Shown here: positions 57,610 through 61,247 of the stretch, one piece after another
Position numbering within the stretch: the stretch's first letter is position 1
Layout: each line of letters opens with the position of its first letter
Sequence record: AP017925.1
DNA: 64,000 bases
Strand: one strand, 5' to 3'
Translations under genes and position numbers: made by a program
The notes under the pieces: model-generated
The model's input: the letters and a program-made list of their open reading frames with translations, nothing else
Told to the model about the DNA's origin: nothing
The model's database searches: none

Positions 57610-57653
57610 ACATAAAAGCGAGGAGACCCGAAGGTCTCCTCGCTCGTTATGCC
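57610..57653. terminator. symmetric terminator after the permease gene
   Basis: ACATAAAA-GCGAGGAGACC-cgaa-GGTCTCCTCGC-TCGTTATGCC. Confidence 0.85.
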
Positions 57654-58384
57654 GTGCGTTGTTTCTCAATGACTGTCGCTGTCACGTACAAGACGAAGGA
57701 TAACAACAGGAGGTATGTGGAGAGTGCCATGGCGTTGTCGAACTCAAACAAGTGAAACCGCTCAAAGATTTCAGTCGTCATGACTTTAGGCCAATACGCA
57801 AACACCACGATCACTCCAAACATCGATAGACCAAACGACGTACAGGTCACGAAAATCCGCACCAAACCCCTCAGATTGCTCCGAATGTAGATTTGGACTG
57901 CAACTGTACGTCGCGATGCTCCGAGCGCGTAGGCGGCCTCTAGAATGTCTCTATTGGTGCCTCTGAATACTTGAGCCACCAACACAATGCAGTAAGGAGT
58001 CAGGCAGTACAGCTGCGCCACCAATAGCCCTAACCACGTATTGACGAAGATGTCGCCAAACAGCATTCCAAAGATGCCGCTCTTGCCGTAGAGCATTAAC
58101 AAAGCCACGCCAAGCACGATGTCCGGTACTGCGAGCAACAGCCCACTGACCAAAGACATCACCGTCCCAGCGCGACTTGGTACAGCCATCGCGAATGCAA
58201 CAGGAAACGCCAGCACGAGCGCTCCTAGAGAAGCTAGAGCGCTTAGGAGTAGCGATGTACCGAGTGCAGGCAGACACTCGACAAGCACCGCTACATTGAA
58301 CGAGAACTGACTCAGTACGTACAGAACAGGCGCCATCAGCCACAGACAAATGACGCCGTTCGTGACTGATAGTGCGCGACCCAT
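57647..58384 (-). CDS. ABC transporter permease, ModB/CysT-like
   Basis: About 5-6 TM segments, VPDIVLGVALL, and the EAA loop ILEAAYALGAS. Confidence 0.8.
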   Translation of the reverse strand: MGRALSVTNGVICLWLMAPVLYVLSQFSFNVAVLVECLPALGTSLLLSALASLGALVLAFPVAFAMAVPSRAGTVMSLVSGLLLAVPDIVLGVALLMLYGKSGIFGMLFGDIFVNTWLGLLVAQLYCLTPYCIVLVAQVFRGTNRDILEAAYALGASRRTVAVQIYIRSNLRGLVRIFVTCTSFGLSMFGVIVVFAYWPKVMTTEIFERFHLFEFDNAMALSTYLLLLSFVLYVTATVIEKQRTA

Positions 58385-59172
58385 TACTGGATCAGACCCA
58401 GGCTCTTGAAGGACTGGATGTTCTTCGGATCAGCCAGGAACTTCACGAAGGCAGCCGTTTCCGGACGGTTGTTCATGATGCCCACACCGAACGAGGACAC
58501 GTGACCCGGCACCTTTTCACCGTTCTTCAGCGTGTACGACACTTGACTGTAGTCATAGTTCGGATTATCCAGACCGTACGGCGCCGGCAGTTCGAAGAAC
58601 TTCTGCTTCGAGCCGACCGCGAACGACTTGTAGGTGAAGATCACGTCGAGGTTGCCGGCCTTCATCAGGTTGAACAGATCCGTGGTCTCGTTACGGTCGT
58701 ACTTCGACACCGCCTGGAACTTGGTGCCGTGTGCTTGGTTGTACAGACCGAAGATGAAGTGTGCGTAGTAGCCCAGCGGGTCAGCATTCGGGTTCGAGAA
58801 ACCGTAGTTCAGCTTGGACAGCTTTTGCATCCAGTTGTCCTTGGTGAAACCCGGGTCCTTGAGGTAGACCAGCACGATCGGATCGATGGCGATCTGTTGG
58901 GCACGCACGTCTTTGAAGCGCGAGAGAAGCCAGGTGTCTTCGGTGAAGAACAGATCCGGCTTGTAGCCTTGCTTGAGGTAGTTCGCCAGGCCGGTCACGG
59001 ACTCGGTTTCGCGCAGCTTGGTGGTGTGACCGGTAGCCTTGTCGAAGGCCGGAGCCAGTTGTTTCACCAACGGGAACGGGCTGTCTTCGGAGTACACCGA
59101 CAGGTTGCTGGCGAAGACCGCGAACGAGATGAATGCCGTGGCAATGGCGGCAAAGAAGTGCTTGAGTTTCAT
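58384..59172 (-). CDS. oxyanion (molybdate/tungstate/sulfate) binding protein, ModA/WtpA-like
   Basis: Signal peptide, PDLFFTED, FSNPNADPLGY, GNLDVIFTYKSFA, and the C-terminal AAFVKFL. TAATG-coupled to the permease. Confidence 0.75.
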   Translation of the reverse strand: MKLKHFFAAIATAFISFAVFASNLSVYSEDSPFPLVKQLAPAFDKATGHTTKLRETESVTGLANYLKQGYKPDLFFTEDTWLLSRFKDVRAQQIAIDPIVLVYLKDPGFTKDNWMQKLSKLNYGFSNPNADPLGYYAHFIFGLYNQAHGTKFQAVSKYDRNETTDLFNLMKAGNLDVIFTYKSFAVGSKQKFFELPAPYGLDNPNYDYSQVSYTLKNGEKVPGHVSSFGVGIMNNRPETAAFVKFLADPKNIQSFKSLGLIQ

Positions 59173-59201: not shown

Positions 59202-59225
59202 GCGAAACGGCCGAAACCGTTTCGC
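59202..59225 (-). terminator. hairpin between the TAXI and ModA-like genes
   Basis: GCGAAACGG-ccgaaa-CCGTTTCGC followed by TTTAAA on the minus strand. Confidence 0.6.
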
Positions 59226-59243: not shown

Positions 59244-60164
59244 TTACAGGTCGTACCACGGCCAGCCGCCATGGTTGTTCGCATCCACTTCTTGCCACTT
59301 CGGATGCGTGCCGGTCTTGTCCTGGATGTCACCCAGCTTGGCGTTGAAGCAAGCGCGCATGGACTTCAGCTTGTCTTGCATGCCAGCCGAACGATACACA
59401 CGGGACACGAGCAGCGCTTGGGTAGCCACCGATTGCACGCCTGCGGCGTTCAGGTTGGCGTAGGACAGCTTGGCCGGGAAGTACAGCTTCGAAGCTGCCA
59501 GCTTGCTCACGAGGTCAGCGGGAATCGGCAGGATCTTGAACGAAGCCGGCAGAGTCTTCACCATCGGGTGCGGTGCGCCGCCAACGACCAGGATCGCATC
59601 CAGTTCACCCGACAGCAGTTTGGCTTTCAGCTGGTCATTGTTTGCCACCGGCAGCACTTTGAAGCCTAGACCGGAGTTGGCAGCCACGACGGAAGCGGAA
59701 GCGATCGAACCACCCACGGCGCCGACGTTGCGACCGCGCAGGTCCGACAGTGTCTTGAACTGAACGTCCTTGGCACCCAGGGAAGTACCGAAGTAGCCAC
59801 CTTCTTTCTTCACATCAGCACGTGCGATGAAGTGCAGCTCTTCGGGATGCAGAGCTAGCAGGGTCTTGATATTCGCGACCTTGGAGGCATCGGTACGGCG
59901 CTCGAATTCGAGCATGTCGGCCTGGACGATGGCTGCGTTGACTTGGTTGCCGATCAGCAGGTTCTTGTTGTCGATACCGCCGGTGGTGGTCTGTTCTTGC
60001 CAGTTGCCGTTGCCGCAGACGGCGGCCAGCTCGTTGAACATGATGCTGTAGGTCGAGCCGCCCTTGCGGTCGCCGGTAGCGACGATGATCTTTTCTTGCG
60101 CGAATGCTTGCGCGGTAAACGCGAACGCCAGCAGCGCTGCGATCGAGGCGATGAACTTCTTCAT
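59244..60164 (-). CDS. TAXI-family TRAP solute receptor-like periplasmic protein (~306 aa)
   Basis: Signal peptide MKKFIAS...AFA, IIVATG...GSTY, TTGGIDN, AIVQAD, LHPEELHFIAR, LSDLRGRNV. Confidence 0.75.
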   Translation of the reverse strand: MKKFIASIAALLAFAFTAQAFAQEKIIVATGDRKGGSTYSIMFNELAAVCGNGNWQEQTTTGGIDNKNLLIGNQVNAAIVQADMLEFERRTDASKVANIKTLLALHPEELHFIARADVKKEGGYFGTSLGAKDVQFKTLSDLRGRNVGAVGGSIASASVVAANSGLGFKVLPVANNDQLKAKLLSGELDAILVVGGAPHPMVKTLPASFKILPIPADLVSKLAASKLYFPAKLSYANLNAAGVQSVATQALLVSRVYRSAGMQDKLKSMRACFNAKLGDIQDKTGTHPKWQEVDANNHGGWPWYDL

Positions 60165-60198
60165 TTCAGTTTCTTCCTTGCTTCTTGGTTGAGAGAGA

Positions 60199-60342
60199 TT
60201 ACAGCTTGTAACCGGAGTCTTGAGCAGCAGGCTCGGCGGCTGCAGGAGCAGCTTCAACCGGGGCTTGCGACTGGTTCGTGGCGAAGTACAGACCGCCGAG
60301 GATGGCGAGCATCAGTACGCCGCCGATGATACTGGCTTTCAT
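60199..60342 (-). CDS. small single-TM protein (47 aa)
   Basis: Hand translation MKASIIGGVLMLAILGGLYFATNQSQAPVEAAPAAAEPAAQDSGYKL*. ATGA overlap with the upstream gene. Confidence 0.7.
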   Translation of the reverse strand: MKASIIGGVLMLAILGGLYFATNQSQAPVEAAPAAAEPAAQDSGYKL

Positions 60343-61094
60343 GCGATCACCTTGACGTTTTCGATGGGTTTCAGAATGTTGCCCAGGATCACGCCGCCTT
60401 CAGCCGTATAGTTGATGGCGCGCACTTCTTGACCCTTGATCTGGTCACGGACGTAGTTGTCGTCGGCGAGAGCCATGCGCAGCTGAGCGATGGCTTTGGC
60501 GTTGGTGTTGTCGACTTCGTCGAACGCAACCTCTTCCTTGAACTTCGACATGAAGTCCTCGCCAGCATTCATAGCCGCACCGGTCTCGACCGCGGCCAGC
60601 GACATCTCGTACAGATCCTTGGCTTTCACGACGTTGCGCTTGAACACTTCCAGCGACGTCTTGGCATCCTTGAACTGGTCAACGCGGTAAGCCAGCAACC
60701 GCTCGAAGTCGCTAAGCTGATCCTGATAGGTTCTGGCTTCTTCCGGATAATCCTGCACCAGCTTGGCAACCTTTTTGCGGAACTTCTCCAGACTGGTTGC
60801 CTGGCCTTCGAGCTTTACCCGAGCCGTTTCCAGCTCTTGCGTACGCTCTTGTTGACGCGTGTAAAGCGTTTCGATCGGATTGGCCTGTACGACAGCGGTG
60901 ACGGCTTTGAACTTCATGTTCGTGAGCCAGGTGGTAACGGCCGGTTGCAGAGCCAGTACAGCACCACCGACAACGGCAGCAATAGCGAGGCCGACGATGC
61001 CCTTGATGATCAGGAAGATTGCAGGCGCCACAGCGAGTGCTACCCCTCCCACGATCCCAAGCTGCAGGAGCCGCTTGTATTTTTGTTTGTCCAT
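60339..61094 (-). CDS. membrane-anchored coiled-coil protein, PspA/IM30-like (~251 aa)
   Basis: Two N-terminal TM segments then NPIETL and a long helical coiled coil. Start moved to MDKQKY. Confidence 0.6.
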   Translation of the reverse strand: MDKQKYKRLLQLGIVGGVALAVAPAIFLIIKGIVGLAIAAVVGGAVLALQPAVTTWLTNMKFKAVTAVVQANPIETLYTRQQERTQELETARVKLEGQATSLEKFRKKVAKLVQDYPEEARTYQDQLSDFERLLAYRVDQFKDAKTSLEVFKRNVVKAKDLYEMSLAAVETGAAMNAGEDFMSKFKEEVAFDEVDNTNAKAIAQLRMALADDNYVRDQIKGQEVRAINYTAEGGVILGNILKPIENVKVIA

Positions 61095-61247
61095 GATGTT
61101 CTTCGGGTTAAGTTGATCGAGAGCTAACATTTGCTCAAATCATCCCATGGCTCTGTTATTTTCTACCAACTTGAGATGACAAAAAAAGAGAGAGGCAGGC
61201 CCCTGCCTGGGCCAAGTTCCCCCGAGCCTCTCTCCAAAAAGTAATCG

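Follow-up and report, generated by a model that had tools for sequence, protein, structure and literature searches.

Most nutrient-uptake genes known from phages encode either a lone binding protein, as with the cyanophage PstS, or a complete system. The cyanophage PstS plugs into the host Pst system, PstCAB (bioRxiv 10.1101/2021.07.20.453049), and genes for envelope and transport proteins are frequent in huge phages, where some lie close to genes for membrane-stress proteins (bioRxiv 10.64898/2026.10.24.761521). Importers that share ATPases have also been described, with MsmK (PMC4519317) and FhuC (PMC10147376) as examples. Here we describe two open reading frames (ORFs), ORF192 and ORF191, of Ralstonia phage RP12, a phiKZ-related jumbo phage whose host is the plant pathogen Ralstonia solanacearum; they encode the binding protein and the permease of an ATP-binding cassette (ABC) importer, and no ATPase gene accompanies them. 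The window analysed, a stretch of 64,000 nucleotides from record AP017925.1, corresponds to bases 127255-191254 of the complete 279,845-bp RP12 genome (AP017924 / NC_041911). By our estimate there is about an even chance that the pair is an ATPase-less half importer that is powered by a host ATPase and whose substrate has shifted to a cationic solute.

The 2017 genome paper gives ORF191 and ORF192 as "ABC transporter subunits" (PMC5468394). Their presence in RP12 is therefore already known, and the novelty that an earlier note on this DNA had attached to it falls away. What is new here is the ATPase-less and phage-restricted nature of the cassette, its placement below the cut-offs of the curated families, and the replacements in its cleft and channel.

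Organization of the ORF192-ORF191 locus

Both genes are on the minus strand and end at a terminator (positions are those of the window):

58384-59172, minus strand: ORF192, the binding protein gene; 262 amino acids; secreted periplasmic solute-binding protein
59110-59172, minus strand: ORF192 signal peptide, residues 1-21, cut after VFA and before S22, as read from the translation
57647-58384, minus strand: ORF191, the permease gene; 245 amino acids; ABC type I importer permease
57616-57645, minus strand: intrinsic terminator with a 13-bp stem, 8 G-C pairs, a TTCG loop and a T-rich tail

The stop codon of ORF192 and the start codon of ORF191 share TAATG, an arrangement of translational coupling, and the terminator sits directly 3' of the ORF191 stop and closes the pair. 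The N-terminus of ORF192 is of the Sec type, with an n-region (MKLKH), a hydrophobic core and no lipobox Cys, and a hydrophobic N-terminal segment was found in all four aligned full-length members of its clade. ORF192 matches Pfam SBP_bac_11 (E 3e-19); ORF191 matches BPD_transp_1 (E 1.4e-8), has about six transmembrane (TM) helices and is the sole permease gene of this kind in the RP12 genome. The earlier note had read a signal-peptide binding protein coupled through TAATG to an EAA-motif permease and followed by a terminator, and the two domain matches and the 13-bp stem bear this out. A secreted binding protein with an EAA-loop membrane subunit marks the pair as parts of an ABC type I importer.

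The pair is encoded by the phage, as the earlier note had held. RP31, an independent isolate, has the region with 100% identity to RP12 (blastn), the flanking genes are phage genes that are syntenic with those of phage FLC1-1B, and the GC content of the pair (0.52-0.56) is close to that of the phage genome (0.534); host contamination is ruled out by these three observations. The absence of an ATPase, noted earlier for the window, extends to the complete genome. The PF00005 profile gave one sub-threshold match across the RP12 genome, which is the thymidylate kinase; tblastn of the genome with the WtpC ATPase returned no match under E 0.6; and no RP12 ORF has a Walker A motif together with LSGGQ. 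A cognate ATPase elsewhere in the genome is thus ruled out, and of the two findings that the earlier note had named as able to overturn its reading, such an ATPase or host contamination, both were looked for and neither was found. An adjacent ATPase gene of the WtpABC/ModABC type is absent at the RP12 locus and genome-wide, while the permease gene is present and coupled.

Relationship to molybdate and tungstate importers

The best PDB sequence matches are Archaeoglobus fulgidus ModA/WtpA for ORF192 (3cij/2onk_E, E 6.5e-15) and A. fulgidus ModB for ORF191 (2onk_C, 7e-18). The AlphaFold2 (AF2) model of ORF192, with a predicted local distance difference test score (pLDDT) of 94.9, matched 3cij_A in Foldseek with an E of 2.5e-19 and a template-modelling score of 0.74; its top ten matches were all archaeal ModA/WtpA proteins (0.72-0.76), and the model has the two-lobe class III binding-protein fold seen in PDB 3CIJ and 3CG1. 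For the ORF191 model (pLDDT 88.5), the corresponding score against 2onk_C was 0.86, and PotC was the third-best fold match.

In the NCBIfam ranking WtpA and WtpB came out on top for the pair, yet far under the cut-offs. ORF192 scored 62.6 and 63.4 bits against cut-offs of 242.75 and 355 for WtpA (TIGR03730 and NF003196, respectively) and 17.8 against 288 for ModA. ORF191 scored 76 bits against 340 for WtpB (NF040839), 59.7 against 182.6 for ModB (TIGR02141), 47.6 against 246 for CysT (TIGR02139) and 31.1 against 326 for PotC (NF007047). The profile match of ORF192 is to SBP_bac_11/WtpA and not to PotD, and the ESM Atlas look-alikes were generic SBP_bac_11 clusters only. Because the best NCBIfam, PDB sequence and model-fold matches all agree, we place ORF192 and ORF191 as descendants of the WtpAB/ModAB branch of type I importers, outside the curated equivalogs, with ORF192 in a phage-specific clade derived from the WtpA/ModA class. 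The ModA/WtpA-like label of the earlier note holds for this superfamily branch, by PDB and fold; classification with hidden Markov models, which it had proposed, ranked WtpA and WtpB first, but every curated cut-off was missed.

Acidic replacements in the predicted ligand cleft

Cleft positions were counted by column in eight members of the phage clade and 77 cellular relatives, and the combined signature and the loop charges were compared with 146 cellular relatives. The segments concerned are:

59080-59088, minus strand: E29-D30-S31, first ligand loop; A-G-S in cellular WtpA-like proteins
58999-59004, minus strand: E57-S58, second ligand loop; G-S in cellular proteins
58936-58941, minus strand: E78-D79, third loop; A/S-D in cellular proteins
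58765-58794, minus strand: N127-P-N-A-D131-P-L-G-Y135-Y136, the WtpA-type NPNxDPxGY motif with its Asp kept and the Arg after Tyr replaced by Tyr
58678-58689, minus strand: E162-T-T-D165, N-terminus of a C-lobe helix; K at position 162 in cellular proteins

Five carboxylates have been gained in the phage clade, namely E29, D30, E57, E78 and E162 in place of A, G, G, A/S and K. E29 and D30 each occur in 7/7 phage sequences, whereas the cellular relatives have A (70/77) and G (61/77) there, and E78 occurs in 8/8 versus A in 59/77 and S in 17/77. The small neutral anion loops H-A-G-S-L and G-S are replaced by S-E-D-S and E-S, with both Ser residues kept. Three basic residues are lost: the conserved K/R70, K162, and R136, which is Tyr in 8/8 phage proteins and Arg in 69/77 cellular ones. 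D131 is present in all eight clade members and is Asp in 68/77 cellular relatives. These cleft replacements were found in all or nearly all clade members; complete members carry four or five of the carboxylates, and 128 of the 146 cellular relatives carry none.

The cleft loops of the clade carry a net charge of -6 to -8, against a median of -1 in the cellular relatives, whereas the mature clade proteins are basic overall, with an isoelectric point of 8.8-9.3 in 6/7 and 7.1 in one (cellular median 6.0). All five new carboxylates lie at strand ends or helix starts of the AF2 model, which are the parts that border the cleft in proteins of this fold. Since the cleft is acidic while the protein as a whole is basic, the pattern argues for a specific change of ligand, to one that would be positively charged or rich in hydrogen-bond donors.

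Changes in the permease channel

Two segments of ORF191 bear on how it would work:

57920-57940, minus strand: EAA...G coupling loop (E149-A150-A151...G155), the ATPase docking site
58121-58126, minus strand: P87-D88 in the third TM helix (TM3); the Asp is common to PotC/PotI, with T, P, H or S in anion permeases

The EAA loop is kept in every permease of the phage clade, including that of a relative with 20% GC (L007). At the TM3 site the phage clade has Pro-Asp, as do Escherichia coli PotC and PotI, and a PotC-like permease of Marinovum has Pro-Glu; WtpB has Pro-His, CysT/CysU Pro-Thr, ModB Pro-Pro and CysW Ser-Pro. In this small sample of three polyamine-type and 17 anion-type permeases, 17/17 of the anion-type proteins have T, P, H or S at the position of D88. 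The TM5 motif R..GE(F/Y)G is present in 16/17 anion-type permeases (the Pantoea permease left out) and absent from the phage clade, PotC and PotI. ORF191 thus has VPD and TSFGLSMFG in place of the anion motifs LP(T/P/H) and R..GE(F/Y)G.

M104 and S106 of PotC contact spermidine (PMC11414716), and they align four and two residues upstream of D88 in ORF191; for this reason the TM3 stretch around D88 probably lines the transport pathway. The channel changes point in the same way as those of the cleft. The earlier note had proposed a pair of the molybdenum (Mo), tungsten (W) or sulfate type, which does not sit well with scores far under the WtpA, ModA, WtpB, ModB and CysT cut-offs and with the replacement of the anion loops and of two permease motifs.

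As a separate observation, ORF191 covers just positions 253-519 of the 528-position PHROG profile phrog_1577 (unknown function). The phrog_1577 family therefore includes proteins about twice the length of ORF191, which might consist of two fused permeases or of a binding protein joined to a permease.

Distribution, relatives and selection

Among 50,697 phage records, the binding protein was found in RP12 and RP31 only. A search of 1.84 billion representative proteins with the clade profile gave four clusters at or above 189 bits, and the next score, about 94 bits, marks the start of the ordinary cellular WtpA-like proteins. A maximum-likelihood tree unites the eight clade members in one monophyletic group (SH-aLRT, the Shimodaira-Hasegawa-like approximate likelihood ratio test, 99), and their branch is the longest internal one, at 1.06 substitutions per site compared with a median of 0.13. 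The nearest cellular relative (P0025) belongs to a full binding protein-permease-ATPase (A-B-C) operon beside a Mo-cofactor gene. The phylogeny that the earlier note had called for to identify a donor yields a monophyletic clade and a nearest relative, but the branch is long and the clade has no close cellular counterpart.

Five other contexts of the pair were recovered, comprising three phage or phage-like contigs and two short fragments, and in none of them does an ATPase gene adjoin it. One is an 86-kb phage-like contig (L004) with SLT, NAD-dependent ligase, DnaJ and other proteins weakly similar to those of RP12; another is a 28-kb IMG/VR contig (L014) on which PF00005 has no match anywhere; on a third (L011) the pair abuts a T4-type prohead protease (Peptidase_S77). 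L007 and L041 are short low-GC contigs. In L004, L014, L011 and L007 the permease gene comes directly after that of the binding protein and overlaps it by 1 or 4 nt; in L041 the order is the same, with a broken permease call that starts about 220 nt downstream and does not overlap. The ATPase-less architecture and the EAA loop are kept across contigs of 20% to 56% GC. Judged from these sequences, the pair is a phage-restricted, monophyletic two-gene cassette.

Between RP12 and L004 (about 70% amino-acid identity), the ratio of nonsynonymous to synonymous substitution rates (dN/dS) comes to 0.24 in the binding protein and 0.14 in the permease, values that show purifying selection on the two genes. 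The related phages FLC1-1B and FLC4-3B retain ORF189, 190, 193, 194, 195 and 196 in order, and where RP12 has ORF191-192 they have two small genes unrelated to these; the pair, being absent where its flanks are present, is thus an accessory cassette.

Three further observations concern relatives of single genes. A 29%-GC contig (L005, 1885-2697) has a clade binding protein without a downstream permease, by which some phages may use the binding protein alone. A protein from the metagenome-assembled genome GCA_016211085.1 (P0037; L010 4519-5391) has three of the five phage carboxylates and the Tyr-Tyr pair, and is probably the single cellular sequence that groups with the phage clade (SH-aLRT 99), on a long branch that leaves its placement unsure; it is an orphan that has no permease or ATPase gene beside it, adjoins a UPF0182 membrane protein and lies near a true MoaA. 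Permease matches in records named 'Acinetobacter phage MD-2021a' were rejected as phage examples, being surrounded by bacterial chromosomal genes (pcaR, pobA, afuA-cysA-fbpB, soxA, iscS and phnX). These records, 328-379 kb long (L009 = CAKLQH020000001.1 193522-203965), are probably bacterial sequence filed as phage.

Neighbouring envelope genes and polyamine context

Upstream of the pair, the following features were recorded:

59202-59225: palindromic 9-bp perfect hairpin between ORF193 and ORF192
59244-60164, minus strand: ORF193, a secreted TAXI-TRAP-like orphan binding protein, 306 amino acids from the annotated start
60199-61130, minus strand: ORF194 and ORF195; ORF194 has 47 amino acids and one TM helix, ORF195 has 263 amino acids, TM helices and a coiled coil

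ORF195, 194, 193, 192 and 191 follow one another on a single strand, and all five encode envelope proteins. The hairpin has a weak T tract on the minus (coding) strand, merely TTTAAAT, and may serve, as a leaky or partial terminator or as a processing site, to balance ORF193 transcripts against those of ORF192/191. ORF193 matches NMT1_3 (2.5e-7) and, under the cut-off, TRAP_TAXI (9e-15). Its homologues occur in phiRSL1, Achromobacter phage Motura, the FLC phages and several Vibrio jumbo phages; its cellular relatives have at most 35% identity, and Ralstonia was absent from the ORF193 matches in a scan of cellular genome contigs. Between RP12 and FLC1-1B (L003 5125-5973) ORF193 is 85% identical while its neighbours are 33-73% identical, which reflects either unusually strong constraint or recent exchange of that gene.

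In Motura the homologues of ORF195-194-193 stand in the same order and are followed directly by genes for homospermidine synthase and glutathionylspermidine synthase, and in RP12 the same module is followed by the ORF192-191 pair in place of these polyamine genes. The module spans 59244-61130 on the minus strand of the window; the compared loci are L039 6025-7858 and L040 4761-7855. phiRSL1 has the module proteins in looser linkage, with homospermidine synthase 6.8 kb from the ORF193 homologue. Homospermidine synthase was found in the Motura and phiRSL1 species only within the phage collection, and the RP12 genome has none. Phages need polyamines and carry polyamine enzymes (PMC9992855), and the Ralstonia host secretes putrescine in large amounts (PMC12802222). 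Although circumstantial and centred on the gene next to the pair, this evidence favours a polyamine above any other single ligand for the altered pocket.

Proposed mechanism and alternative explanations

In the mechanism that we favour, the cassette descends from the WtpA/WtpB-ModA/ModB molybdate/tungstate lineage. ORF192 would be exported to the periplasm by its signal peptide during infection, and ORF191 would insert into the inner membrane and presumably form a homodimer there, as ModB does and as expected from a single permease gene. Since the phage has no nucleotide-binding subunit, the EAA loop of ORF191 would have to dock onto a host ABC ATPase, and host ATP hydrolysis would power transport; borrowing a host ATPase, as the earlier note had suggested, is the most economical mechanism. 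The acidic cleft and a channel without anion motifs make a cationic solute a likelier substrate than molybdate, tungstate or sulfate, with a polyamine (putrescine or spermidine) as our first guess and a hard metal cation as the second. The fully specified form of this proposal, in which a virus-specific half importer of jumbo phages has arisen from a Mo/W importer and now takes up a cation, most plausibly a polyamine, functioning only as a chimera with the host ATPase, is a tentative one that we think rather doubtful.

Several points weigh against a cation importer, and many of them favour a true molybdate/tungstate (or sulfate) pair that would borrow host ModC or CysA for uptake, or sequester the anions, during infection. 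The closest sequence and fold relatives are WtpA/ModA and ModB/WtpB, and the nearest cellular relative stands beside Mo-cofactor genes. S31, S58 and Y181 align to the ligand residues Ser12, Ser39 and Tyr170 of E. coli ModA and are retained. WtpA itself coordinates W/Mo through carboxylates (PMC10221389), so that sites of this type tolerate and use them; in Pyrococcus furiosus WtpA the carboxylate ligands are Asp160 (PMC10221389) and Glu218. D131 is, from the conservation of its motif, the probable counterpart of Asp160, and two columns are candidates for Glu218, column 163 (E/S in cellular proteins, T in the phage clade) and column 165 (D/E in both). With S31, S58, Y181 and D131 kept and WtpA using carboxylates, an oxo-metal ligand is still conceivable. 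In addition, the lining of the cleft by the five carboxylates is read from loop positions in the secondary structure of the model, and inter-lobe salt bridges may account for some of the new acids, as could be the case for D30 and R160, which are equivalent to A11 and R153 of E. coli (PDB 3axf title). The permease comparison was small, the Motura adjacency is a single case that concerns the ORF193 homologue rather than ORF191/192; assembly in an infected cell, host ATPase use and substrate identity are inferred. Nevertheless, we consider the molybdate/tungstate explanation unlikely, given 63 bits against WtpA cut-offs of 243-355 and 76 against 340 for WtpB, five extra cleft carboxylates and three lost basic residues at positions that are neutral or basic in 128/146 cellular relatives, and a channel with an added Asp and without the Arg/Glu motif of 16/17 anion permeases. 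Furthermore, no Mo/W-dependent enzyme, Mo-cofactor gene or U32 peptidase was found in the phage.

A role other than import is quite improbable in our judgement. The pair could act as a decoy or inhibitor that shuts a host uptake system or excludes superinfecting phages, with the permease titrating the host ATPase, or the binding protein docking on a host permease or sequestering a periplasmic signal. Its place within the five-gene envelope run ORF195-ORF191 would suit such a role, as would ORF193, another orphan binding protein for which no membrane partner was seen in the phage (no search aimed at a TRAP partner was made), and the binding protein of L005 that occurs without a permease. However, the two genes are co-inherited and translationally coupled in 4/5 other contexts and stand in order in L041 too, and purifying selection holds both the residues of the ligand site and the EAA loop, as a working transporter predicts; a pure blocker is disfavoured because it would have no need of a conserved, remodelled ligand pocket. 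The missing ATPase, and the dispensability implied by the absence of the cassette from FLC1-1B and FLC4-3B, would also fit a functionless remnant, decaying or carried along as a passenger, of a cellular operon that was captured and whose ATPase gene was lost. This is highly improbable, as neither frame is broken, dN/dS stays at 0.14-0.24 between sequences with about 70% amino-acid identity, the architecture persists in contigs of 20% to 56% GC, and the GC content of 0.52-0.56 fits the phage genome (0.534). A half importer for a cationic solute on a host ATPase is therefore the reading that we retain.

The earlier note had also suggested that the pair serves Fe-S or Mo enzyme supply, by way of a U32 operon. 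Peptidase_U32 (PF01136) has no match in the whole RP12 genome, which takes away the U32 link, and no Mo/W-dependent enzyme or Mo-cofactor gene was found in RP12. Pfam does not bear out the published label of ORF79, 'molybdenum cofactor biosynthesis protein A', because the protein has no Mob_synth_C domain; this 'MoaA' lacks the C-terminal domain of MoaA and belongs to the generic radical-SAM proteins. The tie of the pair to Mo or Fe-S enzyme supply is unsupported. ORF79 lies in a cluster (L012 24043-29998; RP12 genome 84042-89997) of radical-SAM ORF76, 77 and 79, ORF78 of unknown function and the DUF3050 protein ORF80, which looks like a small-molecule or peptide modification pathway.

If our reading is true, a conserved cassette that supplies the catcher and the channel and runs on the host motor would be a new viral way to rewire host transport, and would give the first demonstration of a viral ABC membrane channel that takes over a motor of its host. 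Nature would also have provided a clear example of an anion-binding scaffold turned to cations, of use to protein engineers. Should the substrate be a polyamine or metal cation, import would be added to the polyamine-synthesis genes known in phages, and RP12 could recapture putrescine exported by Ralstonia. Should the pair instead bind Mo or W, it would be an unusual virus-borne trace-metal gene in a phage without an obvious Mo/W-dependent enzyme, which would need explanation.

Comparison with known transport systems

The closest described systems are A. fulgidus ModA/WtpA-ModB2C2 (PDB 2ONK, 3CIJ) and P. furiosus WtpABC. They give the best sequence and fold match for both proteins and share with RP12 the single permease gene, the Asp of NPNxDPxGY and the order of binding protein and permease. 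RP12 differs from them in having no WtpC/ModC, with an identity of about 24-26% and scores far under the cut-offs. Its binding protein is about 30-80 residues shorter than archaeal WtpA, with A-G-S changed to E-D-S, G-S to E-S, and basic residues lost; in its permease, the TM3 His/Thr/Pro is Asp and the TM5 Arg/Glu motif is lost. E. coli ModABC resembles the pair in the ligand positions Ser12, Ser39 and Tyr170 and in the stop/start overlap of modA and modB, but modC comes next in E. coli whereas a terminator follows the permease gene in RP12.

The E. coli systems PotD-PotABC and PotFGHI share with the RP12 pair a cleft rich in carboxylates and aromatics (PotD E36, D168, E171 and D257). PotC and PotI also resemble ORF191 in the TM3 Pro-Asp and in the absence of the anion-type Arg/Glu motif, a functional resemblance only, from a small sample. 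Unlike RP12, each Pot system combines two distinct permeases and encodes an ATPase of its own; the RP12 binding protein is of SBP_bac_11 and not PotD-like, and ORF191 is not a PotC member.

With the cyanophage PstS, the pair has in common that a periplasmic binding protein of a phage needs transporter parts of the host. The cyanophage provides the binding protein only, which is close to the host PstS, whereas RP12 provides the channel too and would take only the ATPase from the host, and its clade is without a close cellular counterpart. MsmK in streptococci, MsiK in Streptomyces and FhuC-Isd in Staphylococcus aureus are similar in that operons without an ATPase are powered by one encoded elsewhere; in those cases all parts are in one genome, whereas for RP12 the ATPase would be the host's. 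Finally, the ABC systems described for huge phages in a 2026 preprint are complete, with binding protein, ATPase and permease (bioRxiv 10.64898/2026.10.24.761521), while the RP12-type cassette consistently comes as binding protein and permease without the ATPase.

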